Assembly (NCBI GenBank): GCA_002104945.1 | Contig: MCFH01000048.1 | Span: 248,001-312,000 of the forward strand | Source of the DNA: Piromyces finnis finn | Lineage: Eukaryota; Fungi; Neocallimastigomycota | DNA: 64,000 bases | Reading direction: 5' to 3' | Shown: positions 2,659 to 54,700 of the stretch, piece by piece | Layout: each line of letters begins with the position of its first letter | How positions within the stretch are numbered: position 1 is the first letter of the stretch | Translations under genes and position numbers: made by a program | The notes under the pieces: model-generated | Databases searched by the model: none | What the model was told of the DNA's origin: nothing | The model's input: the letters and a program-made list of their open reading frames with translations, nothing else

Positions 2659-4157
2659 TGTAAGAAATATTTGTGGCCATAAGTTTGCCCACAAATATTT
2701 CAATTGAAACCTGTGAAGATATTAACTGGATTTAAAACAAATTCAGATAATATCTATAATCAATTAAACATAATAATTAGAATTAAATGATCCCAATAAT
2801 TATTTTAAAACACCTTTAAAAGTCATCTTTTAAATTTTGATTCAGTGAAAGGGTTATGATTTCAAAAAATTTAATATCAATACACTATAACCCTTAGCCA
2901 AAAATAAACAAATACGAAACTACGCATAACTCGCCAAAAACGATCGCTACGGCTGTAAGTGCTACGGCTATGAAACCAGATTTATTAGAAAGCTTAAGGG
3001 AAAAGCTATATTTTGGTATAATCGCGGTCCTTCTAACTGGTCATTTAAGGAAGATATGGTCATTTGAAGATTTTAATAAGTAAATTAAAATTAATATGAT
3101 ATCAAGTATGGATCATAGACATTTCTTATGACTTGACGAAAATTAAAAAGATATCAATAGAAATTCTAATTATATTAATTTAATTAATGATAGTGACTGT
3201 TACTAAAAATAGAACTAAACCATTTAGGTGTAACAGTTAACATTTATAAATTAAATAATTTTAATTATTATAAAATAGGTTAATGGATCAAGTGTTTAAA
3301 TGATTAATCATATGTTTATTTTATTTTATGTCATGACAAAACAAACAAATAAACAAACAAACAATCTTATTATATTATTAACATATTACATGTAATACTT
3401 TATTTTTATCAATTTAATAATCTGAACAAAGAATATAAAATAGAATGAATTGAATTTGATTTTAATTCTTTGTAAAGATTATAGTTATAATCTTAATTAT
3501 ATAGTTATTAAATATATTATAATTTATATTATTATTAATAAATAAATAAAATTTTATAAAAAAAAGTTATTCTAAAGAATAAATATTAATTTTTCATTTG
3601 GAAGTTTAAGGGTTATTTTATATTTAAATTTAATTTCTTAAAAAACATATTTACTATATAATTGATAACATTCTGACCTGGCCGCATAACCAAATCCAAA
3701 AACTTAACAAAACCATATATTCTGGTCACCATTTATTGGCCAGATATATGTATAACCATATATTAATGGTTATTAATTAAATAGGAAGTTTATTTGCTTT
3801 ACCCAATCAAGTGGTAAAGAAAATAAACTAATATAGTTAAATAGTATAGTTAAAACTAACGTTAAATACTTTAGCGTCAGTATTAAAGTAAATTAGTAAC
3901 TATAATAATAATTAATGTATTATAATTATACTAAATAAATAAAAGATATAATTAAAATTAATTATTTAAGTAAATTTATTTCATAATAATATTTATATAT
4001 ACTTGTATTTATTCTTGTGTTATAATATTTATTTTCTTTCTTTTATTATTTTTTATAAAACTTTATTTAGTTATTAACTCGTATAGAGAGGTAATAACTA
4101 ACTTAATTAACTAAATTATATAACTTATTAACTAATATTATAAAAACACCTTTTACA
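2659..4157 (+). mobile_element. Solo LTR of the element-1 family, interrupted by a family-A LTR
   Basis: 2659-2711 plus 3715-4157 match the LTRs of the gypsy element at 9029-22564 (TGTAAGAAATATTTG...CCTTTTACA). Confidence 0.85.
2712..3709. mobile_element. Solo LTR family A (TGTGAAGAT...CTTAACA), shorter variant
   Basis: TG...CA ends and a perfect 5-bp TSD AAACC (2707-2711 / 3710-3714). Confidence 0.9.
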
Positions 4158-4162
4158 AAATT

Positions 4163-5397
4163 TGTCACAATAACATATAAAAATTTAAAAAATTTGGACA
4201 CATGGAAAAAATTGTCAAAATCACAATTCATGAAATTTGACATTTCATGAAATTTCATAATTTTGAATTATTAGTTAAATTAATTAAAATATTAATTTAA
4301 TAATATTTTACTAATAATAGTTTATTTAATATAAATATTAATTGGAAAGCTATTTATTATCCGGAGATAAATAGTGTAACAATTAATTAATATTAAACAA
4401 ACCAATTAGTAAAATAAGATTCATTTAAATAATTATTAATATTATTTTTAACAACTTATTAATATCGATATTTAAAGAAAATTATATTATTATTACTATT
4501 ATATTTTATTAATATTTATATTTATATTATTATACATGTATAACTTAAATTATATTATTATTATACTTTATTAATATCAACATTATATTAAAAATGAAGT
4601 ATAAATAAGTTGAACAAAGAACAACTTTAAGAAGTTCTTTGTGAGATTATTATACTCATTTTTATATAGTAAATTCAATATTTAAAATTAATAATTATCA
4701 TTTATTTATATTATAAAAATTAAATAAAATATTTCTTAAAAAACTATATTTATTACTCTTTTATTTATAAAAATTTATTATTTACTATATAATTAAGCCT
4801 ATCCTAACCTAGTAGACTTAATTATAGTTCTAAATCCACTCTAACTCTTGACAAAAATTAAAAATTTTTTTAAAATTTGAAAATTTGAAAATTTGAAAAA
4901 ATTTCAAAGTATAAAATTTCTAATATTTGAAATTATTAAATTTTTTAAAATTATTAAAATTTTATTATTAAAAATTTTATTTTAAATTTATTAACTATTT
5001 ACAATAATTATATTAATTATTAATTTATAAAAATTAAATATTTTATAATTAGATAATAATTAATTAAAATTAAAAAATGTAATAATTAAAATTGTTCATG
5101 TATAAAAAGAACAAAAATTGACAAAAATTACGAAGCTTTAGCGTTAGTAATTTTTTAACTTAAAGTTAATAAAATTTATAAACTCCTATAAAACCTAAAA
5201 CTTTAAAAAATTTAATATTTTTAATAACTTAATATATGCTGATATTAAGTTATTGTTAAAATAAAAATATTATTTAATTTTCTTTATATAAATATTATTA
5301 GCTTTACGCCTTCAATAGGAAAGCGTATTATATTTGTTAATTAATATAACTAGTGTGCTTACTACACTTTTCTTTAATAAAAAATCGCTTTTTGACA
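4163..5397 (+). mobile_element. Solo LTR family D (TGTCACAAT...TTTTGACA), interrupted by a family-L LTR
   Basis: Matches the uninterrupted 5' LTR at 46424-46941 and contains the self-priming target AGCGTTAGTAA at 5140-5150. Confidence 0.85.
4213..4853. mobile_element. Solo LTR family L (TGTCAAAATC...CTCTTGACA)
   Basis: TGTCA...TGACA ends and a 5-bp TSD AAAAT (4208-4212 / 4854-4858). Confidence 0.9.
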
Positions 5398-5399
5398 TT

Positions 5400-6655: not shown

Positions 6656-7787
6656 TGTTAAGTTTTTGGGTTTGGTTATGCGGCCAGGTCAGAATGTTAT
6701 TAATTATATAGTAAAAATGTTTTTTAAGAAATTAAATTTAATTATAAAATAACACCTTAAACTCCCAAATGAAAAATGAAAAATTTATATTTACTTTAAA
6801 ATAACTTTTTATAAATTTTTTATTTATTTAATAATAATAATATAAATGATATTATAAGTAACTATATAATTAAGATTATAACTATAATCTTTACAAAGAA
6901 TTAAAATCGAATTCAATTCATTCTCTTTTATATTCTTTGTTCAGATTATTAAATTGATATTAATAAGAATAAAGTATTACATGTAATATATTAGTAATAT
7001 AATTAAATAAGTAATAAGATTGTTTGTTTGTTTGTTTGTTTGTCATGACATAAAATAAAATAAACATATGATTAATCATTTAAACAGTTGATCCTAATTA
7101 GTAATTATAAAAACTATTCAATTAATAATTCATCATTATTAATTGATATTACCATAACATATTTGTTATAATTAAATAATTATTATTTTCAAAATTATTT
7201 CTAATAAAACTTGCCGTTAACCTATTTTATAATAATTAAGATTATTTAATTTATAGGTGTTAACTGTTACACCTAAATGGGTCTAGTTCTATTTTTAGTA
7301 ACAATCGTTATCATTAATTAAATTAATATAACTAAAATTCCTATTGATATATTTTTAATTTCATCAAGTCATAAGAAATATTTATGATCCATACTTGATA
7401 TCATATTGATTTTAATTTACCTAATAAAATCTTTAAATAATCATAACTTCCTTAAATGATCAGTTAGAAGGACCGCGATTGTACCAAATTGTAGCTTTCT
7501 TCCTAAGCTTTCCAATAAACCTAGTTTCATCACCGTAGCACTTACAGCCGTAGCGATCGTTTTTGGCGAGTTACACCTTATTTCGTACTTGCTTATTTTT
7601 GGTTAAGGGTTATAGTGTATTGATATTAAATTTTTGAAATCATAACCCTTTCACTGAATCAAAATTTAAAAGGTGACTTTTAAAAGTGTTTTAAAATAAT
7701 TATTGAAATTATTTAATTATAATTATTATGTTTAATTAATTATAGATATTATCTGAATTTGTTTTAAATCCAGTTAATATCTTCACA
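6656..7787. mobile_element. Solo LTR family A (inverted, 1132 bp) with non-matching flanks
   Basis: Reverse complement of 30217-31348. The left flank TAAAA comes from family F and the right flank CACTT from family M. Confidence 0.85.
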
Positions 7788-9018: not shown

Positions 9019-9545
9019 CAAAACAAAGTGTAAAAGGTTTATTATAATATTAGTTAATAGGTTATTAAATTAGTTAATTAAGTTAGTTATTACCTCTCTA
9101 TACGAGTTAATAACTAAATAAAGTTTTATAAAAAATAATAAAAGAAGGAAAATAAATATTATAACACTAAAATAAATATAAACACTTATATAAATATTTT
9201 ATGAAATAACTTTTACTTAAATAATTATATTTTAATTATATCTTTTATTTATTAATTATAATTATCTACATTAATTATTATTATAGTTATTAATTTACTT
9301 TAATACTAACGCTAAAGTATTTAACGTTAGTTTTGACTATACTATTTAACTATATGAGTTTATTTTCTTTACCACTTGATTGGGTAAAGCAAATAAACTT
9401 CCTATTTAATTAATAACCATTAATATATGGTTATGCATATATTTGGCCAATAAATGGTGACCAGAATATATGGTTTCAATTGAAATATTTGTGGGCAAAC
9501 TTATGGCCACAAATATTTCTTACAATGCCCCCCTAAGGAGAAAAC

Positions 9546-12500
9546 CTAGGCAGGGTTTTGGACACTAACCATGAATTCCTGGTAGCATTTATCTTGAAAT
9601 TCCTTGAGTAGCTTATCATAGTGGGAGTTCTTGTCAATGATATCGGCATCAACCCACTCTTGTCTAAAGTCACTAAAGGTAGCTAAGTATTGGTAGTTAT
9701 CCTTCTTTCTTCTGGCATTCATGATTTTGATAATTTTCTGGTAGCCCACTGGTGCAGGTGTTAGTTCTTCAGGTTTGTTATGGTAGGGCTCAAGTTCACT
9801 GATATGAAACACAGGGTAGACATTGGGGAAAGGTGACTTGCTGATATCTAACCGGTAGTTGAGCTTGCTTTCATCAATTCCAATAACCTTGAAGGGACCG
9901 TACTTTCTTGCTTGTAGCTTGTAGAAGGGAAGAGGGTTGTAATTTTCTGGTTTTCTTAACCACACCAAATCCAGGAGCCTAATTTTAGGGTAGTTAAGTT
10001 CTCTTCTATGGTCCAAATGGTCTAAGAACCGTGTTCTTGATATGTCCAACATGTGCTTTAAGTTACCTAAGTTGTGAGCGAAGCTATCTAATATAGGAGC
10101 TTCACCAAGTGAGTGGACAAGTTCTGAGTCTTGAGGGTTCATATGTACCTGGTAGTTATACAAGGCTAGGAATGGGGACTGCTTAGTAGAACTGTGCACT
10201 GCATTATTATAACAGAACTCAGCTAAGTACAAGTACTTCAACCATTCGTCGTCATCAAAGGTCTTCACAAAGCATCTAAGGTACATACTTACGTAGGAGT
10301 TGTTACGTTCTACCTGACCAACTGTTTCATGATGGCCAGTAGTAGCAAGGTTTACTTCTACGCCAAAGAACCCCATAATGTCCTTCCACAACTTACTAGT
10401 GAACTGGACACCACGATCCGTAGTAACCGATCTGGGACAACCATGTAACTTGAATACATGTTGTAAGTATGCTAAGGCTGTCTCTTTAGCAGTAGGCATA
10501 CTCCTAAATCCCACTAAGTGTATCATCTTGGTTAACTTATCGCTACAAACCATGATACAACCTCTTCTAGTGACTTCTGGGGGTTCTGAGGGACTACTAC
10601 CTGGTTTTCTACGTTCCTTAATAGGTAGGTCCGTCAGGAAGTCAATTTCTACTTCTTGCCAAGGTAAGTCTGCAACTTTTACCCTAGCAGCGCTACCGTA
10701 CGGCTTGTGTCTGTTGTCCTTTTGGGTACAACATATGGTACAAGCTTTAATATATCCCGCAATGTCATCCTTCATTTTTGGCCAGTAGTAGTTTCTGGCT
10801 ATCAGGTCATAAGTTTTATCTTTTCCCAGATGACCTGCTGTTTCACTATCGTGGTTAAGTTTTATGATTGTTTCCCTTAACACCTTTGGTACATATGTAC
10901 GTTCTGGTGCATCCTTTCTAACAATCAACCCATTAACCATCAACCACTTCTTTTTGATGAGCTTGTGGCCTCGTTTTGCGTCAAGACCATCTCTAATTTC
11001 CCTAGCAAGCTCATCCGTGTTGTAAGCTTGTTTCAGTTCTCCCACAAAGCTTACTTCTAACACCGCATAGCACTCTTCTTCCACGGGTGGAAATTCTTTT
11101 ACCTGTTCAGGTCGAAGGAGGCTAGCTTTTTCCATCTCCAGTTGTACCTGTTCTGGAGATACCATTCTTGATAGGATATCGGCTCTACCATTCATTTTCC
11201 CTGGCCGATATATTATTTCGAAGTTGTATGCAGCAAACAGCTCTTGCCATCTTGCCTGTCTTGCTGTCAACAACTGTGGTTTTGTGGCGAACAGGAGATT
11301 CCTATGGTCACTATATACTAGGACCTTATGTTTCGCACCCATTAACAGGTGTCGCCACTCGATGAAAGCATTCCTAATAGCCAACAACTCCTTTTCCGTG
11401 ATGGAGTAGTTGATTTCTGCTTTCGTAAGCTTCTTGGAATAGTAATACACAGGGTGTAATTCGTTGTCATCGCCTAGTTGTGATAGTACACCACCCACCG
11501 CGTAGTTACTAGCGTCGCACTCCACTATGAACTGACGGTCATGGTCAGGATATGCTAATACTGGTGGAGACAACAGCATTTCTTTTAACTTCTCGAACGC
11601 CTGGATGCGTTCTTCATTCCACAGGAACTGTACCTTTTTGGACGTCATAGCATATAACGGCCTTGCTATCTTAGAGAAGTCCTTTATAAACTTCCTATAA
11701 TAGTTGCAGAATCCAAGGAATGACTGTAGTTCTTTAATGTTGGTTGGTTGTGGCCAACTTGCTACAGCTTTTAACTTTTCTGGGTCGGTTTTAATACCAT
11801 ATTTTCCAACTACATGACCCAGGAATGCAAGTTCTTCCTTGTGGAACTCACACTTCGCCAACTTAGCTACTAGACGATTATCTATTAGCTTTTGTAGGAC
11901 TCTTTTTACATGCCCTACATGCTCTTCAAGTGACTTGGAGTAGATGATGATATCATCCAAGTACACTTGACAGCAATCATTGATTTCCTCTGCCAGCACC
12001 GTATTAATGAACCCTTGGAACGTGGCAGGAGCATTAGTCAACCCAAATGGCATCACTAGATATTCATAATGCCCAAACTTGGTTGAGAATGCCGTCTTGT
12101 ATTCGTCACCTTCACGAATACGCACGAGGTTGTAGGCAGACTTCAAATCCAACTTGGAGAAGATAGTCGCGCCTTTCACAGCCTCAAACACTTGACTGAT
12201 GAGTGGTAAGGGAAAGGAGTTACGCACTGTTACCTTATTAAGACGCCTATAATCAGTACATAATCGTCTTTCACCACTCTTTTTGGGCACGAATAACACA
12301 GGATAACCTGCAGGACTTTCTGACTTCCTGATGAAGCCTTTTGCCAGGTTTTCCTCTATATATTCCTTCAGTGCTTTTTCCTCTTCTGGATTGAAGGGAT
12401 ATATAGGCCCTTTATGAAGACTAGCATCCGGCTCCAGGTCGATCTTACAGTCGTAAGGACGGTGTTCTGGTAGCTGGTTAGCTATTTCTTCATTAAATGC

Positions 12501-15041
12501 TTCTTTGAAATTGTGGTAGTACTTCTCCACGATTTCTTCAGGTGTGGGTTGATTTTCGTTTAAGTTTTCTCCCTGTACCAACCCTACGTAAATGTGATTT
12601 TTCTCTAAGTTTGACTCTTGTACCAACCCTACTGAAACACAAGTTTTCTCTAAGTTGGATTCAAATGCCAACCCTCCGGAATCACATTTTTTCTCTAAGT
12701 CAACACTCTGTACCAACCCTACTGAAACGGGATTTTTCTCTAAGTCAGAACTTCGTGTCAACCCTCCGGAAACACAAGTTTTCTCTAAGTTGGAACTCGA
12801 TGCCAACCCTCCGGAACTTCCGTTTCTAGTTTCTTTTGTAGCCTTGTGGCTACCATTGCCCACGATTTCGGCTTCAATGTTTTCTGCGGTTACAGTTACC
12901 AGAGGCCTTCTTGCTTTTGCATTAGTAACTGTAGTTATGGGACTTAATTGAGTACAGTAGTAGATGTCACCACCATTCACACCATAACTGTTGGTATGTC
13001 CTTTATCCTTATCATTATCTACTACGAAGTACCTCACTTGTGCATCTTTATCGTAACCTCTGTAGATAAAGTGCTCATCCATGAAGCCCAGTCCCACAAT
13101 GATCATCTCCGGCATGTTGTCGGATAGGTGACAACTTGTGTTGAAGCAGTATGGTTTAGCTTCTTGTTCGCCAGATGGAGTTAACCATAACTTCAACTGC
13201 AAGTCATCTGAGAACTGCTTTAACTCGATATCTCCATTCACAGTTCTGAATATGGCTGGTTTGTCCACTACCTTTAACCCGAGCTTCTTTGCCAAATTTG
13301 GGTGAATGAGGTTTGTAGTGGAACCAGTATCATACAAGACTTCTACCCTTTTTATATCTCGAGGGTTGCTTCTTGCATTTATTTCAGCTACTAATTGGTT
13401 CTGACTGTAGTAGCTGTTATTAACCGTCGTTTGACTTGCCATAGCCTTAGGTAATGGGTTATTTCCCATACTAGAAGGTCCTTGCCTTGGTTGGAAGCTA
13501 GAACTTCTTCTAAAGCTTGACTTGTTTAATGATTCACGACGTTCTTTAATACCGTTATTGTTTTTTGCGTAAGCCTGAGTGTTGGTCTGCTCAACTTTAG
13601 GCTTATTATTTGGCTTGTTGTTCTTCTGCTTTAACTCAGCCCATCTAGATGGTCTACATGGGTCTGTGATGTCCAACAAGGCCATAATAGTGGTCTGGCG
13701 GTCTCTTTTGTCGTACTTTTCTATGGTTTCATTACGGAAGACTGCTTGGTGATCATCGCACTTTAACAAGACTTCACTTAATGTTTCCAGCGTACGTTCC
13801 TGTTCAGGGATATCATAGAACGCTTCCCTGACAGAAGGCCTGACCTGTTGTATTAACACCTGTCTCCTAACATTTTCAGGAAGCCCAAGTGTTTCCGTCA
13901 ATTCATTGAACTCTTCCAAGTAGTCGTATGCTTTTCCCCACTCATGTGTGAGTTTAAGCAACTTTGACTTGCAGAGTTCATGGGGAGACTCTGGTGGAAA
14001 CTTATCTTGAAGGTGGAGGAATAGTCTTTCAGCATCAGGATTCCTACGCTGCAGCGTCCTCTCTCTAAGTCTATACCATCTCAATACTTTCCCACCTAGA
14101 TGATCTTCAATGAAGCTAACCTTTGCCTTTTCGTCGTTACCATAGTCATATGGATAACGTTTGAAATGACGTAAGCACTTCTCTTGAAAACCCTCTAAGT
14201 CTATCCCATTATTATCAAACATAGGCACTTTTTCTTCATACCTATGTACTCGCCAGTCGAACATCTTCACGTCCCCATCCTCGGAGTATTCCGTAGGGTT
14301 GGTGCTGCTACTAGTTCCAGCACCATGAGGATTACCCGTACCACCGGTTTGATAGGATGTTCTTTCATGAGCTCTGGCTTCAGCTCTTCTGTTCATGGCT
14401 TCGACTTTAGCCTCGAACAATTTTTCTCTTTCTTCTAGAGCGTTTCGTTGCTCCCTCAATCTGGCCATCTCTTCTTCAAGCTCTTTTTTATAAGAGACAA
14501 AGGCACTAGATTGACGGTACAACGTTTCTTGGTTGTTTAGCACTTGCTGGTGGTCTTGTAACCTTTCCTCATGTTCTGCAGTAAAGGCATTTTCCACAGC
14601 ATGCAGCTCTTCCAAGCTAACTTGGCTAGCCGACTCATTAGCTTCCAACATTTGATCCACTTCAACAAATTTTTGCTGAAGAGCATCGTTTATCTCGCTC
14701 TTGTAAACCTCAATACCACGAAGTTGTTCTTCCATAGCACCCAGACGGTTTCCCATACTAGCAAACTGGCTAGATATTTCTGAAACCCATCTATTAAGAA
14801 GAACCTCAATGTGTTGCATTGGGTTTACCTCACTATTATTAGTAAAAAAGAAAGAAGGATCAACAGGGGCGGGCATAGAATCCCCCTGTTGAACCTGTAA
14901 ATTCTGATTAGATTCGACCTCAGTGCTTTCGAGAAGCACCGGGGTTCGAACCCGTGACATTCCCTCTACACCATCCATGCCATCCGCGCTCGCCGCGTCA
15001 GGACGGGTCCCGTCCCTTACGAATGATGTTTTTGTGTCCAT
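9546..15041 (-). CDS. Gag-Pol polyprotein of element 1 (PR, RT, RNase H, integrase, chromodomain); true N-terminus displaced to 21720-21765
   Basis: Motifs: PR YDTGS; RT LDLKSAY and YLDDIIIYS; RNase H CDASNYAVGGVL; integrase HHCC, DRGVQF and GQVERNN; C-terminal chromo-like YQYLATFSDFRQEWV. Confidence 0.95.
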   Translation of the reverse strand: MDTKTSFVRDGTRPDAASADGMDGVEGMSRVRTPVLLESTEVESNQNLQVQQGDSMPAPVDPSFFFTNNSEVNPMQHIEVLLNRWVSEISSQFASMGNRLGAMEEQLRGIEVYKSEINDALQQKFVEVDQMLEANESASQVSLEELHAVENAFTAEHEERLQDHQQVLNNQETLYRQSSAFVSYKKELEEEMARLREQRNALEEREKLFEAKVEAMNRRAEARAHERTSYQTGGTGNPHGAGTSSSTNPTEYSEDGDVKMFDWRVHRYEEKVPMFDNNGIDLEGFQEKCLRHFKRYPYDYGNDEKAKVSFIEDHLGGKVLRWYRLRERTLQRRNPDAERLFLHLQDKFPPESPHELCKSKLLKLTHEWGKAYDYLEEFNELTETLGLPENVRRQVLIQQVRPSVREAFYDIPEQERTLETLSEVLLKCDDHQAVFRNETIEKYDKRDRQTTIMALLDITDPCRPSRWAELKQKNNKPNNKPKVEQTNTQAYAKNNNGIKERRESLNKSSFRRSSSFQPRQGPSSMGNNPLPKAMASQTTVNNSYYSQNQLVAEINARSNPRDIKRVEVLYDTGSTTNLIHPNLAKKLGLKVVDKPAIFRTVNGDIELKQFSDDLQLKLWLTPSGEQEAKPYCFNTSCHLSDNMPEMIIVGLGFMDEHFIYRGYDKDAQVRYFVVDNDKDKGHTNSYGVNGGDIYYCTQLSPITTVTNAKARRPLVTVTAENIEAEIVGNGSHKATKETRNGSSGGLASSSNLEKTCVSGGLTRSSDLEKNPVSVGLVQSVDLEKKCDSGGLAFESNLEKTCVSVGLVQESNLEKNHIYVGLVQGENLNENQPTPEEIVEKYYHNFKEAFNEEIANQLPEHRPYDCKIDLEPDASLHKGPIYPFNPEEEKALKEYIEENLAKGFIRKSESPAGYPVLFVPKKSGERRLCTDYRRLNKVTVRNSFPLPLISQVFEAVKGATIFSKLDLKSAYNLVRIREGDEYKTAFSTKFGHYEYLVMPFGLTNAPATFQGFINTVLAEEINDCCQVYLDDIIIYSKSLEEHVGHVKRVLQKLIDNRLVAKLAKCEFHKEELAFLGHVVGKYGIKTDPEKLKAVASWPQPTNIKELQSFLGFCNYYRKFIKDFSKIARPLYAMTSKKVQFLWNEERIQAFEKLKEMLLSPPVLAYPDHDRQFIVECDASNYAVGGVLSQLGDDNELHPVYYYSKKLTKAEINYSITEKELLAIRNAFIEWRHLLMGAKHKVLVYSDHRNLLFATKPQLLTARQARWQELFAAYNFEIIYRPGKMNGRADILSRMVSPEQVQLEMEKASLLRPEQVKEFPPVEEECYAVLEVSFVGELKQAYNTDELAREIRDGLDAKRGHKLIKKKWLMVNGLIVRKDAPERTYVPKVLRETIIKLNHDSETAGHLGKDKTYDLIARNYYWPKMKDDIAGYIKACTICCTQKDNRHKPYGSAARVKVADLPWQEVEIDFLTDLPIKERRKPGSSPSEPPEVTRRGCIMVCSDKLTKMIHLVGFRSMPTAKETALAYLQHVFKLHGCPRSVTTDRGVQFTSKLWKDIMGFFGVEVNLATTGHHETVGQVERNNSYVSMYLRCFVKTFDDDEWLKYLYLAEFCYNNAVHSSTKQSPFLALYNYQVHMNPQDSELVHSLGEAPILDSFAHNLGNLKHMLDISRTRFLDHLDHRRELNYPKIRLLDLVWLRKPENYNPLPFYKLQARKYGPFKVIGIDESKLNYRLDISKSPFPNVYPVFHISELEPYHNKPEELTPAPVGYQKIIKIMNARRKKDNYQYLATFSDFRQEWVDADIIDKNSHYDKLLKEFQDKCYQEFMVSVQNPA
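12553..12817 (-). repeat. 45-bp (15-aa) in-frame tandem repeat, about 6 copies, between PR and RT
   Basis: Protein units SGGLASSSNLEKTCV / SGGLTRSSDLEKNPV / SVGLVQSVDLEKKCD and so on. The DNA motif ttttctctaag recurs every 45 bp. Confidence 0.85.
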
Positions 15042-16368
15042 GTAAAATATTGTATTAATAGAATAATGTATTTAATACGTATTTAAAATAATGTACAATG
15101 TATTGAATTAATGTACCGTAAATCTTTACAAAATTTATATCACAATACATTAACATAAATCTATGTGAAATCTAAAGTTACGATAAAATAATGTATTACA
15201 ATACATTAACATAAATTTATGTAAATTTAATTTTATGATAAGATAAAGTTTTTGATGATAGAATAAAATTTTAAATTAAATAAATTTTAACCAATAAATA
15301 TTTTAGATAATAAAAAATTTTTTTATAAACTAAGCCTCAAAATTAGAAATAAATAAATTGAATATATGTTTGAAATATAATCAACCATATAGTAAATAAA
15401 TCAAAACTTTATTTTAAGTTTAGAAAATTCTTTAGTAAATAAATTGAATTTAAATAGTTTAATACAAATAATTTCTTTTAATAAATGTATAAATATAAAC
15501 AATGTAAAATTATAATATTAAAACATGTATATTAGAATTTATTCAATTTATTTAAAAAGTATAAATAAAGAAAATTTTTCAACTATTGAAACGATAGTTG
15601 GAAAATCGTATAGGTTAATTTTGTTTAGATAAATTAACATTAGTTTATCATTAGTTTATAGTTTAGATTAATAATTTTAGTTTTAAATAAATATAAATTG
15701 ATTACCTAGTGAGGGCTCTGGTAAAATATCCTTCACGGTAAAGTAATCAACGGTTGTTTAGTTAGTATAGTTTTAAAAATAAATAAATAAATAAATAAAA
15801 ATTATTATTAAAAATAATTAGTTTAATTGTTAGTTTAGTGTTGTATACAAACCTGAACTTTAGAATATTTTACAATTTTCCAACTTATTAGAATAGGAAG
15901 TTCACCTTTGTATACGAATAGTAATAGAAAATAATATTAAAAAAAAAAAAAAAAAAAAAATTAATTATAGTGAGAATTTAATAATAGAATTAAATTCGGG
16001 GATTATATAAAATATATTAATATTAAAAAAAAAAAAAAAAAAAAATTTTTTTGTTAGAAATTAATTTTAGTTAATTTCGGGGTATTTTATAATTATTTGG
16101 TATAGAATAATTTGTTGTTAAAATAGTTTAATAGTTAATAATCAATAAATAGTAATAATAAAAATATATTAGTTTGGTTAATAACTAGTTGTTAGTTTAG
16201 TAGTAGTAAATAATAAAAAGGTTAGTATAGTATAATAATAAGGTTGTTAAATTATTTATTTAATATAAGAATATAAGAATAAAATAATTAGGAATAGTCA
16301 AGTTGAATAGTATAAATAATTGGGATATTAAATATTGGTTGACTATTTGTTGTTTATTAAGTAGTAAT

Positions 16369-18026
16369 ATGAATACTAGATATAGAATGTTAGACAACCG
16401 TGACGATGGAATAGCTGGAGCCAGTGACGCAGGCTCTGAGGCGAGTTCCATGATGGACATTGAGGATGAGACTGGTAAAAGCGTTAACACCAGGGGAAGA
16501 CTCATCCCAAAACCTCCAAGATTTTCAGGAAAAAGAAGTGAACTTCTTTACTTCCTGGCAAGATTGGAGAAATATTTCAAATATAACTTAGAAGAAGATG
16601 CTACCAACGCCTACAAGCTGGATATCTTGGGATGCTACCTGGAAGGAACCGCCGCCGAATGGTTTGCCGACTTGGAAAGAGAAGAAAGCCCCCTGTTGAA
16701 CTCCTATGAAGATTTATTGAGGCAATGAAGGCTCGCTATAAAACTGTAACAGTGCCGATGTAGCCAACAGTCGACTTGCAAAATTGAAGTCAAGTCAATT
16801 CAAGAACGTCATGGACTACTGCGAAGAATTTGAAAAGATGGCTAGAGACTCGTCTTTTAACGATGAAGCGAAAATCCATTTCTTTATGGAAGGTTTACCA
16901 ACTTCAGTCAAGGAAAAAGCTAAGCTCCTTTACCCAAGAATTAGGAAGTTAACTGAGTTAATTAATGTCGTTGCTGCCAATGTAGAATTAGAATGGAAAG
17001 TCTTTGGAAAAGATCCTATGGATGTCGACGGAAAGAAGAACCGAAGATATAACAGAGACTTAGGATCAAGGTACCTCTCTTATGGTGTAAAATATAGAAA
17101 TTATGTAGACCAAGAAAGCCCACTACCTCAGCTAAGCCTAGAAAATGTTTCTTCTGCAAAAGGACTGGACATATTAAGAAGGATTGTCCTCAACTTAAGG
17201 ATAAGGTTATAAATAGACCAAAAGCGTTTATAGCTACTACCGCTGGAAGAAGAATGTTAAATGTTTATGACATTCTATTACAAGTCAATAATGGAGTGTA
17301 TCTTAAAGCTCTTGTGGATTCTGGTTCGGACTTAGACTTTTTGGATTGGAAAGCCGTGGACAAGTACAAGATCCCATTCCAAAGAATGTTTAAGGATAAG
17401 TTTGTTGAAGGTATAGGTGGTAATGGATTCTTGAAGTATGAAACAATTCCTTTAATCATGAACATCAAGAATCATAAAGAATCCATTCAATTCTACCTTA
17501 CTGATCTTCCTTCTGGTATTTCTGTCATTCTGGGTAAGAATTGGTTAAGAAAACACGATCCTACAATTAGCTTTAAGGATCAAACTCTTGAATTCAAATC
17601 CGAATTCTGTTCTTTGAATTGCTGTGCTACTCCAGAAGACATGAAAAGAAGAAATCAAGAAGCGCAATTGGCCAAAGAAGAAGAAAGAAGAAAAGAAAAG
17701 GAACTCGTACAAGAAATACTTAACAATTATAAGAATAGTTTAAAAATTAGAGAAAGTGAAATTAGGAATAAAGAAAATAGAAAAATTATAGATAAAAATA
17801 AAATTCATGTATTAAAAAGAAATGTAGTAAAAATTTAAAATTAAATAAAAAGAATGTTCAAAAGTATATTGTATGTAGTGTTCTTTCAAATGATGAAAAT
17901 AGTGGTGAAGATGTTAGAGAAAATATTGTAGAAATTCCAGATGTATATAAGGAATTTGAAAATGTATTTGATGAAGTTGAGTGTAATGAACTACCTCCAC
18001 ATCGAATATACGATTGTAAAATAAGA
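16369..18026 (+). pseudogene. Gag-PR region of element 2, broken by four apparent 1-nt frameshifts
   Basis: Gag segments lie in successive frames. The CCHC knuckle CFFCKRTGHIKKDC (17146-17187) is in frame with protease LVDSGS. Shifts occur near 16715, 16740, 17100 and 17835. Confidence 0.8.
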
Positions 18027-20867
18027 TTGAAAGATAAAGATAACTTATTTTATGGTCCTTTATACCCTCTAACAGAAGAAGAAAGGAATACGTTAAAGGA
18101 GTATATTTCTGAAAATCTAGAAAAAGGATTTATAAGACCGTCTACTTCACCTGCTGGAGCACCTGTGCTATTTGTTAGGAAAAAGGATGGAACTTTAAGA
18201 TTGTGTGTTGATTACCGAAGACTCAATGAAAACACAATCAGGGATTCATATCCACTACCTCTCATATCTGAATTATTCGATAGATTAAGAGAAGCCAAAG
18301 TTTTTACTAAACTTGATCTCAAGTCTGCTTATAATCTAGTTCGAATAAATGAAGGTGATGAATATAAAACTGCATTTAGGACAAGATTTGGTCACTTTGA
18401 ATATCTTGTCATGCCGTTTGGATTAAAAAACGCTCCTGCAACTTTCCAACATTTTATCAATGATGTTCTCGGGGAATACTTGGATGAATTCGCCTTTTCT
18501 TATATTGATGATATTCTTATCTATTCGAAAAACTTGGAAGAACACCGAAAGCATGTAAAGAAAGTTCTTCAAAGATTAAAAGAAAATGGTCTTTATGCGA
18601 AACTTAGCAAATGTGAATTTGAAACTTCAGAAACTACTTTCTTAGGGCATGTTATCTCAGATAAAGGAATCTCTATGGATCCAAAGAAGGTTAAAGCTAT
18701 TATGGAATGGCCTGTACCAACATCTGTTAAAGAAGTGCAATCATTTATCGGATTATGTAATTATTATAGAAGATTTATTCCAAACTTTGCTAGTATTGCT
18801 AAACCGTTACATAATCTAACTAAGAAAGATGTCAATTTTCATTGGCCAGAAGAATGTAATGAAGCTTTTTGTATATTAAAGAAATTTTTTACCGAGGAAC
18901 CAATTTTAATTCATGCTGATCCTGAATTACCTTTTGTGGTTGAGACAGATGCAAGTAATTTCGCAATCGGTGCCGTATTATCTCAAAGATTACCGGATAA
19001 TAACGAGCTTCATCCAATTTGTTATTATTCAAGGGGATTGACTAAATCGGAAAAGAATTATCCTATTTATGATAAGGAACTTTTGGCTGTTATTGAAGCT
19101 TTGAAACAATGGAGACACTACTTAGAAGGAGCCAAGCATCAATTTATGATCTATACGGATCATAAAAATCTTACCTTTCCTAGAAAGCCTGAACTATTGT
19201 CGCAAAGACAAATTCGCTGGAATTTGTTTTTGACTCGTTATGATTTCAAAATACAATATAGACCGGGTAAAGAAGGTGGAAAACCTGATGCTTTTTCAAG
19301 ACGTCCTGATTATGAAGAAGATAAAAGTAATAAAGAAGACGAAGAAGCCTATTCTTGCTTGACAGTTAAAGAAATCGAAGATACTTTATGTCTTGTGTCT
19401 ATTCAAGGGAATCTCAAAGAAGATTTAATTAAAGAAATTAAAGAAGATGAAGAAATTAAGGAGTTAATAAATATTCTACAAGGAAAATCTACCGCAAGTA
19501 AGAAGTATAAGAAGTTAATGAAGAATTTTAAGTTAAGCGAAGAGGGAATTCTTTTGTATAAAAGTTTAATTTATGCACCAAAGAAAATGAGAGATATAAT
19601 AATCTCAATGCATCATGACAATCCAATTCATGGTCATTTTGGTATTATTAAAACAAAAGAATTAATTACAAGAAACTTTGTTTGGATAAACATGACTCAA
19701 GATATAGTTAAGTTTATTGCTTCTTGTAAAGTTTGTGGAGCTGCTAAGGTTGATCGTCATAGACCTTATGGACTTTTACAGCCGCTACCAACTCCTGAAA
19801 GACCGTGGTCTTCTGTTTCTATGGATTTTATAACTGATTTGCCAAAGTCAAAGGAAAAAACAGTTATAATGGTTGTTGTGGATAGATTAACGAAGATGGC
19901 CCACTTTATTCCGTTTAGAATGATTCCTACTGCTCAAATTGCTGCTGATGTTTTCTTTAGAGAAGTTTTTCGTTTACATGGTCTACCTGATGAAATAATA
20001 TCGGATCGAGGAACCCAGTTTACTTCAGAATTTTGGCAAAGATTATGCACTTTGTTGAACATAAAGCACAATATCTCGAGTGCTCATCATCCTCAAACAG
20101 ACGGGCAGACTGAACGTGTAAATAGTATTTTAGAACAATTTCTTAGATGTTATATTAACAAAAGAAAAGATAACTGGATGAACCTTTTGCCTTATGCTGA
20201 ATTTGCGTATAATAATACACTTCAGCAATCCATAAATCAAACACCATTCTTTGCAAATTATGGGCAAAATCCAAGATTTAGTACCGAAATTCCTGCTGAT
20301 AGCGACAATAGAAGAGCTAACAGGCACGCCTCTCAGATGCAAGATAATATTAAATTTTTAAAGAAGAACTTAGAAAAAGCCAAGAAAAGATATAAGAAGT
20401 ATGCCGATTGTATTAGACTTATTGGACCTAAGTTAAAGGTTGGTGACTTAGTTTGGTTAAAGCGTCCTGACTTACTTCCTAAAGGACCTCCAAAATTAAC
20501 AAATAAGAAACTTGGACCATTTAAGATTATTGAAAAAACAGGACCCGTTTCTTATAAATTGGAACTACCAGAAAGTTTAAGATGTCATCCCGTTTTCCAT
20601 ATTTCGAACTTAGAACCTTATGTTGAAAGAGAAGTTGAAGTGAATGAATCAACTTCTAGAATTCCAAACATTGCTACCGATTCTGCTGAAGGAAGAATTC
20701 CATTGAAGATAGTTAGTGAAAAAGTTATTAATGGAACTAAGTACTACTTTATGGTTTGGAAAAACTTATTACCTTCAGAAAGTACATGGCTTAAAGAAGA
20801 TGAAATCGATGACCCTCAATTGATCCAGGAATACCTTAAATATAAGTCGCTCAGGGGCTCGACTTAA
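18027..20867 (+). CDS. Pol of element 2 (RT, RNase H, integrase, chromodomain); the frame is open upstream to ~17835
   Basis: Motifs LDLKSAY, YIDDILIYS, TDASNFAIGAVL, integrase HHCC, DRGTQF and GQTERVN; chromodomain YYFMVWKNLLPSESTWL. Confidence 0.95.
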   Translation: MKDKDNLFYGPLYPLTEEERNTLKEYISENLEKGFIRPSTSPAGAPVLFVRKKDGTLRLCVDYRRLNENTIRDSYPLPLISELFDRLREAKVFTKLDLKSAYNLVRINEGDEYKTAFRTRFGHFEYLVMPFGLKNAPATFQHFINDVLGEYLDEFAFSYIDDILIYSKNLEEHRKHVKKVLQRLKENGLYAKLSKCEFETSETTFLGHVISDKGISMDPKKVKAIMEWPVPTSVKEVQSFIGLCNYYRRFIPNFASIAKPLHNLTKKDVNFHWPEECNEAFCILKKFFTEEPILIHADPELPFVVETDASNFAIGAVLSQRLPDNNELHPICYYSRGLTKSEKNYPIYDKELLAVIEALKQWRHYLEGAKHQFMIYTDHKNLTFPRKPELLSQRQIRWNLFLTRYDFKIQYRPGKEGGKPDAFSRRPDYEEDKSNKEDEEAYSCLTVKEIEDTLCLVSIQGNLKEDLIKEIKEDEEIKELINILQGKSTASKKYKKLMKNFKLSEEGILLYKSLIYAPKKMRDIIISMHHDNPIHGHFGIIKTKELITRNFVWINMTQDIVKFIASCKVCGAAKVDRHRPYGLLQPLPTPERPWSSVSMDFITDLPKSKEKTVIMVVVDRLTKMAHFIPFRMIPTAQIAADVFFREVFRLHGLPDEIISDRGTQFTSEFWQRLCTLLNIKHNISSAHHPQTDGQTERVNSILEQFLRCYINKRKDNWMNLLPYAEFAYNNTLQQSINQTPFFANYGQNPRFSTEIPADSDNRRANRHASQMQDNIKFLKKNLEKAKKRYKKYADCIRLIGPKLKVGDLVWLKRPDLLPKGPPKLTNKKLGPFKIIEKTGPVSYKLELPESLRCHPVFHISNLEPYVEREVEVNESTSRIPNIATDSAEGRIPLKIVSEKVINGTKYYFMVWKNLLPSESTWLKEDEIDDPQLIQEYLKYKSLRGST

Positions 20868-21714
20868 GAAGAGGGGCATGTAAAATATTGTATTAATAGA
20901 ATAATGTATTTAATACGTATTTAAAATAATGTACAATGTATTGAATTAATGTACCGTAAATCTTTACAAAATTTATATCACAATACATTAACATAAATCT
21001 ATGTGAAATCTAAAGTTACGATAAAATAATGTATTACAATACATTAACATAAATTTATGTAAATTTAATTTTATGATAAGATAAAGTTTTTGATGATAGA
21101 ATAAAATTTTAAATTAAATAAATTTTAACCAATAAATATTTTAGATAATAAAAAATTTTTTTTATAAACTAAGCCTCAAAATTAGAAATAAATAAATTGA
21201 ATATATGTTTGAAATATAATCAACCATATAGTAAATAAATCAAAACTTTATTTTAAGTTTAGAAAATTCTTTAGTAAATAAATTGAATTTAAATAGTTTA
21301 ATACAAATAATTTCTTTTAATAAATGTATAAATATAAACAATGTAAAATTATAATATTAAAACATGTATATTAGAATTTATTCAATTTATTTAAAAAGTA
21401 TAAATAAAGAAAATTTTTCAACTATTGAAACGATAGTTGGAAAATCGTATAGGTTAATTTTGTTTAGATAAATTAACATTAGTTTATCATTAGTTTATAG
21501 TTTAGATTAATAATTTTAGTTTTAAATAAATATAAATTGATTACCTAGTGAGGGCTCTGGTAAAATATCCTTCACGGTAAAGTAATCAACGGTTGTTTAG
21601 TTAGTATAGTTTTAAAAATAAATAAATAAATAAATAAAAAATTATTATTAAAAATAATTAGTTTAATTGTTAGTTTAGTGTTGTATACAAACCTGAACTT
21701 TAGAATATTTTACA

Positions 21715-21765
21715 GTCCAATTTATGGACACCCCGAGGGTTAGGCGACTTACCTGCGTTTTTCAT
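21715..21765 (-). CDS. Displaced first 17 codons of element-1 Gag (MKNAGKSPNPRGVHKLD)
   Basis: The ATG at 21765-21763 joins in frame to DTKTSF once element 2 and one TSD copy are removed. Confidence 0.85.
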
Positions 21766-43263: not shown

Positions 43264-43337
43264 CACTCACGGCGGGACTCGAACCCGCAATCTTCAGATT
43301 AGAAGTCTGACGCCCTATCCAATTAGGCTACGCGAGC
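43264..43337 (-). tRNA. tRNA-Arg(TCT)
   Basis: Reverse complement GCTCGCG...; anticodon arm TCAGA-CTTCTAA-TCTGA; B box GGTTCGAGTCC. Confidence 0.93.
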
Positions 43338-43401: not shown

Positions 43402-44461
43402 TGTCACGAATACTAGTGAAATTACAATTTCAAGATCACTTGGAATTGTGAAATCACTTATGAAAATTCAAAATCAACAAATATTTTATTTTCAAATAAA
43501 TTATAAAATTTTATTAAGAAATATTTAAAAATTTAGGAAAGGTTAAAATATGACCTTAACCCTTAATAATTTTTATAATAAATAACTTTAACCCTTATCG
43601 TTAAAATGGAATAAGAAAAAACACGCGTATCTTTTTTGGTTATAATTACGTTCGTTAGAAAGCCACGCTCGAGACAAACAACATATTTTAAAATCAGGTC
43701 AATATCTCTGCTGGTTCACGAGATATTCCAATTTAAAGATACTTTGTTAGCAATGATTAATTGTTTATTCAGAGAATGATCACCCCTGATATATCAAACA
43801 TAAATCATTCACTCAAAGTATAAAAATTATTGTTTAATTAAATTAAAATTATTTTCCGGAACTAATTAACTTTATTTTATAATAATTATTTCAATAACAT
43901 AATTTATAATCTTTGAACTAGAGGATTATAATTATTAATATTATATTCAATGAATTATATTATAATTAAGAAATAATTAATATTATGAATATTATAAACA
44001 ATAGTTATTTTTTAATAATTAGGAATAAGTCTTAAGTTTAGTTTAAGTATTATAAAATATATTATGAATATAATCATGTATTGAAAAGTTATTTTATTAT
44101 TAAATGTAAAATTACAAATAGTATAAATAGTTTAGAATAGTTATGAAATTAAAATCTTTGTAAAGATTATTAACTATAAATTGTTAACTATAGATTATTA
44201 ACTAGAAATTATTAATTATTAATAATAATTAATACTTAATGAGTATTACTACTAAATAATCTTATTATTATATTTTAGCAATATATTATTAAATAAAATA
44301 AAAGAAATTATTTTAACCATAATATATAATTTAATTATTCATTTATAAATCAATTAAGATTATTTTAATAAAACATTTTTTTTTCTAACCTAGTTATCTT
44401 TTAACCTTTTATTTAATTTGATATTTTAATATTAAATTATAAGTTTAGTAAAACTTTTACA
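43402..44461. mobile_element. Solo LTR family K
   Basis: TSD TACAA (43397-43401 / 44462-44466). Confidence 0.9.
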
Positions 44462-44468: not shown

Positions 44469-45600
44469 TGTGAAGATATTAACTGGATTTAAAATAAATT
44501 CAGATAATATCTATAATTAATTAAACATAATAATTATAATTAAATAATTTCAATAATTATTTTAAAACACTTTTAAAAGTCACCTTTTAAATTTTGATTC
44601 AGTGAAAGGGTTATGATTTCAAAAATTTAATATCAATACACTATAACCCTTAACCAAAAATAAGCAAGTACGAAATAAGGTGTAACTCGCCAAAAACGAT
44701 CGCTACGGCTGTAAGTGCTACGGTGATGAAACTAGGTTTATTGGAAAGCTTAGGAAGAAAGCTACAATTTGGTACAATCGCGGTCCTTCTAACTGATCAT
44801 TTAAGGAAGTTATGATTATTTAAAGATTTTATTAGGTAAATTAAAATCAATATGATATCAAGTATGGATCATAAATATTTCTTATGACTTGATGAAATTA
44901 AAAATATATCAATAGGAATTTTAGTTATATTAATTTAATTAATGATAACGATTGTTACTAAAAATAGAACTAGACCCATTTAGGTGTAACAGTTAACACC
45001 TATAAATTAAATAATCTTAATTATTATAAAATAGGTTAACGGCAAGTTTTATTAGAAATAATTTTGAAAATAATAATTATTTAATTATAACAAATATGTT
45101 ATGGTAATATCAATTAATAATGATGAATTATTAATTGAATAGTTTTTATAATTACTAATTAGGATCAACTGTTTAAATGATTAATCATATGTTTATTTTA
45201 TTTTATGTCATGACAAACAAACAAACAAACAAACAATCTTATTACTTATTTAATTATATTACTAATATATTACATGTAATACTTTATTCTTATTAATATC
45301 AATTTAATAATCTGAACAAAGAATATAAAAGAGAATGAATTGAATTCGATTTTAATTCTTTGTAAAGATTATAGTTATAATCTTAATTATATAGTTACTT
45401 ATAATATCATTTATATTATTATTATTAAATAAATAAAAAATTTATAAAAAGTTATTTTAAAGTAAATATAAATTTTTCATTTTTCATTTGGGAGTTTAAG
45501 GTGTTATTTTATAATTAAATTTAATTTCTTAAAAAACATTTTTACTATATAATTAATAACATTCTGACCTGGCCGCATAACCAAACCCAAAAACTTAACA
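44469..45600. mobile_element. Solo LTR family A (1132 bp)
   Basis: TSD CAATT (44464-44468 / 45601-45605); appears identical to 30217-31348. Confidence 0.92.
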
Positions 45601-51123: not shown

Positions 51124-51137
51124 TGAGACTCTTAATC
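51124..51137 (-). promoter_or_regulatory. Copia PBS (GATTAAGAGTCTCA), candidate tRNA-Lys(CTT) half-priming site
   Basis: Abuts the LTR, lacks TGG, and its reverse complement TGAGACTCTTAATC matches a tRNA-Lys(CTT) anticodon arm. Confidence 0.6.
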
Positions 51138-51797
51138 TGTTAAATATTATTTGACACTAACTTCAATGATTGTGATCTACTTCACAATTTTAATTATATC
51201 TTTATTATATTATAACAATAGAGTATATTAATTAATTGTATTAATTAATTACATTATATTTCAGTACATTTACATAATATAAATACATTATTTACTACAA
51301 TAATATTATATTATTACAAGCCACATATAATCATTTTATATTTAATTTCAATATGAACTTTATTTCTAACAGTTTATAGCTAAATAAGGACATAATTAAC
51401 CAACTAATATAAATTTATTATATGATGTAGTTGACTAGTTAATATATGATAAAAAATGTTACATGTAAAATATATTAAAAATTTATTAATTATAAATTAA
51501 AAATTTTTCTATTCAAATATTAAGAGATTATTCATAATATATATTAAGGATTTAATTAATATATGTTACAATGAATGATCCATATATTATGAATGAAATC
51601 AATTTAAATCCTTAGCTATCCAAAATCATTAAATTTCAAATAATGGATAGTGGGAAAAAGTACGAGGATTTTTGAGAAAAATTTTAAGAATTGAAAAATT
51701 AAAAATAAATTAAATGAATAAAAATTAAAATTAAATAAATTTTTATTTTTATAACTATTCAAGTGTTTTGTGATATCTTATTTGAACCGTAGCATTT

Positions 51798-54700
51798 TAT
51801 TACGAAGAAAATATTATCTTAATTCTATAAATGAATATAGAAAGTGATTTGTCATGAATAATGTACTATTAATTATTTAGACTCTTATAATAAAAATGAA
51901 TAAGTATAATTCACTAGATAATAATCTGAATATTACTATTAATTCCTACCTTAAATCTAATAATAATATTATTTATCTATCTAGTATTATCACTTATGCC
52001 TATTTTTTTATTATTATTTCTTATTATCTTTGTTTATATCCCCCTCTTTTAATATTTATTAATTCTCTTTTATTAAACACTCTTTGTTGTAATTAAGGTT
52101 TTTAGTCTTTTTAATTAATTTTATTTATAATTTTTATTTTAGTTATTTCTATAAGCATTATTAATTAAATCAATAATTGTTTGCTTATTAATTTATATAT
52201 TAAATTTTTATTAAACCTAAAATATTTAAAGTAGAATTATTATTAGTAAATTAAAAGGTTAAATTGAAATTCCTATGTTCTTGCATTTTTCTGAATCAGT
52301 CGTACCAGAAATGATAAATAATAATTATAAATATATTATAAATTTGATATTAGTAGAATACTTTATTATAAAAATAATTATTAAATAATTTTATATAGTT
52401 TATTATAAAAATATAATTTACATAAAATCAAATATTTTATAAATTTATATATTTGATTGGGTTAAATTATAAAAATAATTTTTATTATAAAGAATAATAA
52501 TAATTTTTAGTAGAAAATGAGAAGACTTAGATTACTAATAATAAGTTAAATTTTAATAATAGTTGATATAATTAATTAAATAATACATAATAATATTTAA
52601 AAGACAAAAATAAGTTTTTATATAATAAAATTTATTGTTAAAAAGAGTGTAAAAACAATAAATAAAAGAAAATATAAAAACGAAATTAAACTTGTCTAAT
52701 TTGTAATTATTGTGTTAATAATAAATAATATTTTATAGAGTAAATCTGGTGTTATTATTCTATATAAATATTATTAAAATAATAAAACTATTAAAATTAT
52801 AAAACAAATTAAATATATTAAATAAAACTAGTAGATATTGTTAAAGCTCGTACAATAACTGTCGAGATAAAACAATATAAGATAACAGAAGAAGTAGTTG
52901 AAAAGTTGCAATATAACTACCAATCCGTTATCATTTTTTGTAATAATTATTGTTATATATATTATATAATAATAATTATTATCTACAATTTAATAATAAT
53001 TAGTATTATTAAACTGAGAAGTTAAAAAAAAATTTTATATTTATCTGAAATAAGAGTTTATTATAAGGAAATATAATAAACAACACAAAACCTTAATGTT
53101 ATTTAATTTAAAATGTTTTATTAAGATTGTTTTTTAATAAAGGTTATTTATTATAATAGTTCTTATAATAATAACTCTGGATTTTTTAGTGGAATTCCAG
53201 AGTTCTTTTATTTATAATTTTTTAATAATTTAAAGTTTAATAAAGAATTTCTAATCTTAACAAATAATCTTTTTAGGAAAAGACTAGAAGAAAAACCTAA
53301 AAAGATATTCGATTGATAACTAATATATCAATCATCGTAATATTAAGTAAAACCGAATAAAATTCGGAAAAACCTTAATATCCGATTGTCTTAATATTTA
53401 GTTATATCTTCTAGTTGTTTCTATAAGTTATTTCAAGATACGATACATACACATAAATACAAACGTAAAATAAAATACCTGATGTTTCTTATAAAATGTA
53501 ATACAAAAATTATTAATTAATAAAATAAATGAATGTTTACTATTATTTTAAATAAATTACTAAATTAAATAAATAATTAATTAATATAATAATTAAATAA
53601 ATTTTAAATTAAGTAAATGAATAATTAATATTAATATAAATAAATATTTATAGTAATTTAAATGAATGTATGCTAATAATTTAAATAATTAATTAATTTA
53701 ATAATTAGAAAAATAATTAAATAAGAATTAATAATTATTAATAAATAATTATTAATTCTTACATTTTTGATACGCTACTCCCATAAAAACATAATAAAAA
53801 CTAGCTAAATAAACACGACTTAACCCATAGTAACTATAATAAAAATAAATGATAATAACCCTTAAAAATGAATGAATAATAATTTTATGAAAATATAACC
53901 CTTTTTTTTAAATAAATAATATTCTCTTTATTATATAATAAATCCTGAGTAAAAAACGACGTAATAGTGATAATAATAAAATAAATTATTAAATAAAATA
54001 AAACGACTTAACCCAATAATGTATTAAAATAAAATAATAATGAATAAATAAAAATGAATAAATAAACTAAAAACAAAATGGTATACATCAAATTATTAAT
54101 TCTAGTGTTTTATCCAAGTGTTCTTTAGAAATTCTTTTAAACTTATAAATTAATAAATAGCTAATTGAGTAATTATTACTAAAAATGATAAACTTAAAAC
54201 CTGGGAATAGAATAATAATAACAATCCTAAAGATAAAATACAGAACTCTTTTATGTTTCTGTATAAAATGTGTGCTTATAATAATTGATACTTTTAATAT
54301 TTTAATTTTGTCTTAATTTCATTTTAATTTCATTTTAATTTTATTTTAATATTATTTTAATTTTAAATTTTAATTATTTTATTCAAGGTATTATACATTT
54401 AATGATAGTCAATGATAATTTATAATAGTTTTTCTAAATTTAAACATTTTGAAGTAATAAGAAAATCAAATAAGTAATATTCTATAATATTTTATAATAC
54501 TAAGACATAATTTTAATTTATTCTTTTAATTTTAATAAATAATAACAATAGTAATAATAATATTTAATAGTTAAAAATAATAATACATGTAATAAATGAA
54601 AATGTATAAAAGGAAGATAAAATTCTTCTTTATAAAAATCAGACAATAAACAGATAATAAATAAATTATAAAATATAATAAAGATTTAATTTAAAACATA

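Follow-up and report, generated by a model that had tools for sequence, protein, structure and literature searches.

LTR retrotransposons of Piromyces finnis occupy a narrow site about 65 nt upstream of RNA polymerase III genes

We analysed a 64,000-nucleotide (nt) stretch of the Piromyces finnis genome (contig MCFH01000048.1, segment 248001-312000; hereafter the window, in whose own numbering positions are given), in which ten transfer RNA (tRNA) genes in seven units stand among stacks of long terminal repeats (LTRs). [quoted passage not shown] Overall, the LTR edge was found 63–69 nt from the tRNA +1 position, with a mode of 65–66 nt. The distance was upheld for tRNA genes and for a tRNA-like cassette carried by another LTR family, Q, regardless of the intervening DNA. 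A first register lies closer to the gene: nearly every tRNA in the genome bears a Ty3-like LTR ending 11–18 nt upstream, and in the window such a terminus was found 12–17 nt upstream of every tRNA unit. Because almost every tRNA already carries a first-register LTR, the second register appears as an insertion 46–54 nt inside another LTR, and because later first-register insertions push the older layers outward, stacks build up. A preliminary description of the window had proposed two guilds of retroelements at two fixed positions upstream of Pol III genes, and the genome-wide distances (63–69 nt versus 11–18 nt for first-register ends) support it.

The A LTR measures 1132 bp (TGTGAAG...TTAACA) and has 5-bp TSDs; the K LTR measures 1060–1140 bp (TGTCACGAATAC...CTTTTACA) and the L LTR 643 bp (TGTCAAAATCAC...CTCTTGACA). 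The assembly of this very AT-rich genome (56 Mb in 232 contigs) was searched with patterns made of an element end, a gap of 60–88 nt and a degenerate tRNA A box; the reversed-pattern controls yielded no match for any query. The gap to the A box was 70–76 nt in 67 of 68 matches with 5' ends. For A, 27 sites had the 5' end 63–69 nt from tRNA +1 (mean 65.9, standard deviation 1.6), and none had the 3' end facing the tRNA. For K, 35 sites, about 21 of them independent and one tandem array included, had the 5' end at 64–68 nt (mean 65.7, standard deviation 0.9), and two had the 3' end facing the tRNA. The ratio of 5' to 3' ends pointing toward the tRNA was therefore 27:0 for A and 35:2 for K. L was oriented both ways (six sites): its 5' end occurred at four sites at 65–68 nt and at one outlier at the scan edge, and its 3' end at two sites at 65–68 nt.

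We then read 52 fetched loci around A and K copies directly. A tRNA was located 65–69 nt from the first LTR base in 11 of the 36 A copies, and a tRNA-like cassette at 63–69 nt in three more; the K copies gave five tRNA sites and four cassette sites, all at 64–67 nt. The 5' end of the element was proximal to the tRNA or cassette in 23 of 23 cases. The tRNAs concerned were those for Cys, Gly, Ala, Ser, Trp and Arg, and the host LTRs belonged to more than ten families. Most of the other fetched copies were of two types. Some were flanked by the same 44–50-nt host fragment followed by another LTR, having been pushed off the tRNA by later first-register insertions. Others abutted another A, K or L copy sharing the 5-bp TSD, and the same 5 bp were reused in whole stacks (K-K-K-A on contig C13, L-A-A in locus L007).

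Such a pattern could in principle form without any targeting, through random integration followed by selection, or through segmental duplication that copied a few composite loci. The duplicated contigs, a 5.6-kb tandem array repeating the same tRNA-LTR-K junction, and the frequent inversions and inter-copy recombination all lend this idea something. However, more than 50 junctions differ in tRNA, host, TSD and flanks, copies with 99–100% mutual identity already occupy the register, and selection is unable to yield a 7-nt window together with a fixed orientation. We consider the probability of this account close to negligible.

The point from which the distance is measured was revealed by family Q. 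Its LTR begins with TGTAACGAAT and holds, from about position 21, a tRNA-Gln(UUG)-like unit that comprises A and B boxes and a T run. Cassettes were located by the A-box motif at loci L013, L028, L030, L035, L039, L040, L047 and L048; Rfam (E ≤ 5) and relaxed ARAGORN did not detect them as tRNAs, and the relaxed ARAGORN output was noise. First-register LTRs insert 11–15 nt upstream of the Q unit, as they do at genuine tRNAs. At intact Q termini without a first-register LTR, eight K and nine A 5' ends were found 40–55 nt outside Q; 15 of these 17 insertions lay at 44–49 nt (median 45), and the median distance from the cassette +1 was 65 nt. The DNA between Q and the 17 insertions was mutually unrelated. 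One A copy (C112:1912169) lay in the internal region of Q, just upstream of the polypurine tract and the 3' LTR. Since A and K at Q termini stand outside the LTR, next to unrelated flanks and still about 65 nt away, the ruler is the Pol III gene and not the LTR end, and the distance to the Pol III unit is the sole constant. The preliminary description had called for a comparison at tRNAs lacking a proximal LTR; at the pseudo-tRNAs of Q, the distance stayed at about 65 nt, a result that favours a tRNA ruler.

Several observations weigh against this interpretation. All 62 true-tRNA sites (27 A, 35 K) lie inside a first-register LTR, and insertion into native tRNA-upstream DNA was seen at none of these 62 sites. 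The offset from the host LTR end (44–49 nt) is as constant as the tRNA distance, and a comparison of gap and offset at true tRNAs did not separate the two readings, as some tRNA-Ser genes showed a joint shift of both registers. Insertions into one host family use the same 5-mer repeatedly; therefore, local site preference also matters. One A copy (L004) sits off-register in an LTR body without a nearby tRNA, a few K copies are inverted, and L is found in both orientations. Duplicated contigs and one tandem array reduce the 68 matches to about 50 independent events. The Q cassette is assumed to be transcribed by Pol III and is a putative unit judged by its sequence, and the tether to the Pol III complex is something that we purely infer.

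The first two of these observations also favor the alternative raised in the preliminary description, in which the second guild parasitises LTR ends: A, K and L would recognise where other LTRs end and integrate some 50 bp inward, and the link to tRNAs would be inherited from the hosts. The Q pseudo-tRNAs contradict it, since the insertions there are set about 45 nt beyond the nearest LTR end, amid unrelated sequence and in one case in the internal region. Where an LTR like that of element 2 (a chromovirus at 15039-21714 of the window) ends about 30 nt from a tRNA, K sits 31–36 nt inside it and not 46–54 nt. The host LTR termini have no common sequence beyond TG, and one host family was struck from both sides, in each case about 50 nt from the terminus turned toward the tRNA (L049 vs L034). 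The LTRs of A, K and L themselves (about 90 copies in the fetched DNA) were never struck about 50 nt from their own ends. Parasitism of LTR ends is accordingly highly improbable. A shared target-site motif, which the preliminary description regarded as damaging to its proposal, was looked for among the target sites and none was found; a motif was therefore rejected as the explanation of the positions. Locus L044, a candidate for K upstream of a tRNA-like unit without a first-register LTR, was discarded as such, its host being an element-2-like LTR instead.

The element-2-like chromovirus LTRs displayed a spacing of their own. Their ends (TGTAAAATATTG... and ...ATATTTTACA) were found 29–31 nt upstream of the +1 of a tRNA or pseudo-tRNA in at least five contexts and in either orientation, which places them 15–17 nt within a first-register LTR or 9 nt beyond the end of a Q LTR (L031:1436-1500; C156:96487, C216:2511, C165:534818, C13:896998). 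A third register apparently exists at about –30.

In the window, the preliminary description had listed 11 sites at which A, K, L and a further family, P, land 46–54 bp inside other LTRs. Reading of the junctions from the sequence retained the ten sites of A, K and L, which are marked by TSDs or by a clean host fragment, and removed the one of P. The 5-bp TSDs lie 45–54 nt within another LTR and, where the tRNA still adjoins, 60–66 nt upstream of it. At the tRNA-Gly(TCC) of a Thr-Gly pair (30080..30150, minus strand), a first-register LTR begins 15 nt upstream (30166). A young A solo LTR (30217..31348, plus strand) is inserted 46 nt into this host, with the TSD ATAAT at 30212-30216 and 31349-31353, that is, at –62 to –66 from the tRNA; the LTR starts 66 nt from +1 and its 5' end faces the tRNA. 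At tRNA-Arg(TCT) (43264..43337, minus), the first-register LTR E begins 13 nt upstream (43351). It carries a K LTR (43402..44461, plus) with the TSD TACAA at 43397-43401 (–60 to –64), which lies 64 nt from +1, again with the 5' end toward the tRNA. A young A LTR (44469..45600, plus; TSD CAATT) is stacked 2 nt beyond the K site in E. Thus, the TSDs at the positions claimed earlier for A at tRNA-Gly and K at tRNA-Arg were read there, and the placement of A 62–66 nt upstream of tRNA-Arg is right only as if K were absent.

The remaining junctions are found farther out in the stacks. The gene for tRNA-Trp (311..382, minus), which has an LTR terminus 16 nt upstream, anchors the stack to its right. 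This stack includes an older A solo LTR (2712..3709, plus; about 90% identical to the young copies) with the TSD AAACC at 2707-2711 and 3710-3714, corresponding to positions 49–53 of an element-1-type host LTR (2659-2706 and 3715-4158), and with its 5' end toward tRNA-Trp. An L solo LTR (4213..4853, plus; TSD AAAAT) occupies positions 46–50 of host LTR D, which starts at 4164. The left flank of a young A LTR (6656..7787, minus; 99.9% identical to others) is the body of host F with TAAAA, and the right flank is AAGTG with the 45-nt end of host M (7793-7837). As the flanks derive from two different hosts, this copy arose when two A insertions of a single stack recombined. An old K-like LTR, K' (23952..24754, minus), is followed by the TSD AATTT (24755-24759) and a 46-nt end of host X facing tRNA-Gly 29473. 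Another K LTR (32130..33144, plus) lies at about positions 47–51 of X with its 5' end toward tRNA-Gly 30150, and an L LTR (33149..33790, plus) is stacked directly behind it at the same target site. Two insertions are associated with tRNA-Trp 41483: an L LTR (34629..35265, minus; TSD ATAAT) at positions 50–54 of a host LTR whose end faces this gene, and a K LTR (36143..37158, minus; TSD CAATT) at positions 49–53 of host E with its 5' end toward it. P is a complete solo LTR (51850..52311, unstranded) whose left junction falls at M positions 48–52; on its right there is neither a matching TSD nor a continuation of M. P was ruled out as a second-register family, and its LTR family serves elsewhere as a first-register host, 16 nt from tRNA-Gly in locus L007.

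Later rearrangements were visible as well. The same tRNA/host-D/K junction recurs at least 12 times in tandem arrays whose period is about 5.57 kb (C47, C74, C79:834268-845506), which reflects amplification of a composite locus and not independent insertion. Swapped or mismatched TSDs at L016/L021 (C156, 37 kb apart), at L038/L039 (C156), at 6656-7787 of the window and at L001/L012 are due to inversions or deletions from recombination between dispersed A or K copies. In locus L022 (1501-1632), two extra tandem copies of the first 65 nt of the A LTR directly precede a complete A LTR.

Outside the retroelement coding regions, the GC content of the window is 12–20%. Three retroelements with coding capacity are present, and the remainder consists almost wholly of nested solo LTRs. 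Element 1 (9029..22565, minus) is a first-register Ty3/gypsy element with 497-bp LTRs that are 100% identical. Its LTR ends 13 nt from tRNA-Ser of its target, a tRNA-Ser/tRNA-Met dimer (22578..22742, plus) in which the two genes are 8 nt apart. Element 2, nested inside it, shows a canonical chromodomain in Pfam and its LTRs share 99.8% identity; it is located in the coding region of element 1 with no tRNA adjoining. The third is a copia fragment (48072-50928). The Gly-Thr genes, 5 nt apart (within 29467-30156), also exist as an inverted duplicate with 99% identity. An open reading frame at 61722-62627 (minus) matches a G-protein alpha subunit (Pfam G-alpha, E = 2e-124) and is the sole ordinary host gene among the open reading frames of at least 150 residues examined in the window.

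Full-length copies, about 7.5 kb long for A and about 7.9 kb for K, were recovered and their integrases were classified, as the preliminary description had suggested. Their LTR pairs are 6.4–6.8 kb apart with 5-bp TSDs, and both encode gag followed by protease, reverse transcriptase, RNase H and integrase in gypsy order (Pfam: Retrotrans_gag, RVT_1, RT_RNaseH, Integrase_H2C2, rve, SH3_Tf2-1). From these sequences, A and K are classed as sister lineages of Ty3/gypsy (Metaviridae); their Pol proteins are 62% identical to each other, and A is 45% identical to first-register element 1. L is known here from its LTRs alone, which are similar to those of A and K, and was not placed in a class.

The clade of A and K comprises 31 database proteins at 61–81% integrase identity. 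The Pfam chromodomain (PF00385) gave no match in A, K or these 31 closest relatives; relatives at 46% integrase identity or less, one of them labelled Orpinomyces, usually have it. The last 60 or so integrase residues align with chromodomains, although only about one of the three cage aromatics aligns. The predicted model of this C-terminal segment has three strands and a helix (block-mean predicted local distance difference test score 89–96, with values above 90 across strands and helix), and its best fold matches are the chromodomains of MPP8, CBX7, CDYL and cpSRP43 (probability 0.9–0.98, template-modelling score 0.6–0.65, weak E-values). The modelling suggests a chromodomain-like fold, its aromatic cage degenerate, at the C-terminus of the A and K integrase. 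In metagenome data, contig L056 contained a relative from this clade (75% integrase identity), with an LTR that begins 64 nt upstream of a tRNA-Val and is oriented divergently from it. No LTR terminus was recognisable in its spacer to tRNA-Val, and the metagenome scan yielded no matching empty site. Contigs L053–L055 and L058–L066 had no adjacent tRNA; L063 showed a stack junction only, 5 nt from another LTR end of the form ...TTGACA.

To explain the constant distance, we propose that the integration complex would be tethered to the Pol III pre-initiation complex, in which TFIIIC positions TFIIIB. The cut would fall just beyond the upstream edge of the TFIIIB complex, about 52 bp or roughly five helical turns from the Ty3-like site; the position of the TFIIIB footprint used in this model is that found in yeast. 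The exact bond may be chosen by the local DNA within about 3 nt, and this would explain the reuse of the same 5-mer within a host family. The likeliest tethering module would be the clade-specific integrase C-terminus, with its predicted chromodomain fold and degenerate methyl-lysine cage.

A chromatin-based mechanism has to be weighed against this tether. Integration might take place upstream of the TFIIIB-bound tRNA gene where the first positioned nucleosome has its edge, with no contact to TFIIIB or Pol III, as a sharper form of Ty1-like targeting. The site does lie beyond the expected end of TFIIIB, the integrase retains a chromodomain-like fold that reads histone tails in other proteins, and ordered upstream nucleosomes are used by Ty1 (PMC5911963). 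However, a single peak about 7 nt wide was found, and the 60–88-nt scan gave neither a second peak nor an 80-bp periodicity; the strict orientation is hard to derive from a symmetric nucleosome, and the aromatic cage is mostly lost. We judge the nucleosome mechanism unlikely. A wider form of the proposed Pol III tether is offered tentatively, as a possibility that we hold to be rather less than even: a single pre-initiation complex would be shared by competing LTR lineages at three nucleotide-precise registers, about –13, –30 and –65, the cage-less chromodomain, as an integrase tether of a new kind, would dock on the upstream (Bdp1-side) face of TFIIIB and so fix both position and orientation, and the LTR-borne pseudo-tRNAs would act as portable landing pads that spread safe sites.

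The preliminary description had considered the targeting system undescribed. This is justified for the position and the element class, whereas partitioned tRNA-upstream windows are already known in Dictyostelium and yeast (PMC5006619, PMC5911963). The nearest geometry is that of TRE5-A and NLTR-B of dictyostelids, which use a narrow window upstream of tRNA genes, about 46–50 bp for TRE5-A. The 5' end of TRE5-A always points toward the tRNA 5' end, tRNA-like B-box sites are targeted too, and a Ty3-like element at about –15 is present alongside it (PMC3159450, PMC5006619). A and K share such a narrow window and the orientation. In contrast, TRE5-A is a non-LTR element that employs an APE endonuclease and target-primed reverse transcription, and TFIIIB is bound by its ORF1 protein; A and K are LTR elements, carry a DDE (rve) integrase, make 5-bp TSDs and insert about 15 bp farther upstream.

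Ty3 of S. cerevisiae, DGLT-A of Dictyostelium and Tj1 of S. japonicus resemble A and K as Ty3/gypsy LTR elements with nucleotide-precise integrase targeting of Pol III genes, in a fixed orientation in the case of Tj1 (PMC5006619, PMC4600332, PMC5911963). They differ in inserting at the transcription start, 5–33 bp upstream of the mature end. They correspond in P. finnis to element 1 and the host LTRs of the first register, since the host families at 11–18 nt fall within the start-site window (about 1–33 bp) and A, K and L do not. Moreover, Tj1 is co-directional with the tRNA, whereas A and K are divergent. Ty1 of S. cerevisiae likewise is an LTR element that inserts upstream of the Pol III start and not at it, and it coexists with Ty3. 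Nevertheless, it is of the copia type, is tethered to the Pol III subunit AC40 and uses a broad nucleosomal window of about 1 kb with no fixed orientation (PMC5911963, PMC7459421); A and K have the gypsy domain order and one narrow peak. In the Skipper-2 chromoviruses of dictyostelids, a diverged chromodomain also goes with association to tRNA genes and not to heterochromatin (PMC5006619), but Skipper-2 sits about 100 bp downstream of tRNA genes. In the literature searched, we found no LTR element reported to use one site only, about 65 nt upstream, in a fixed divergent orientation, and no paper that treated LTR retrotransposons and tRNA genes together in anaerobic fungi.

Targeting of this general kind is already known, but the position at about 65 nt is new for integrase-using elements. 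Until now, integrase-bearing elements had been assigned either to the Pol III start site (Ty3, DGLT-A, Tj1) or to diffuse upstream nucleosomes (Ty1). The reproduction of the TRE5-A geometry with different enzymology makes A and K a clean case of convergent evolution. P. finnis provides a naturally occurring case of two or three integrase lineages reading one transcription complex from different distances, and the structural basis of the choice of distance and orientation can be compared directly with the Ty3–TFIIIB and Ty1–Pol III structures. The finding also accounts for the architecture of the large LTR stacks at the tRNA genes of this genome.

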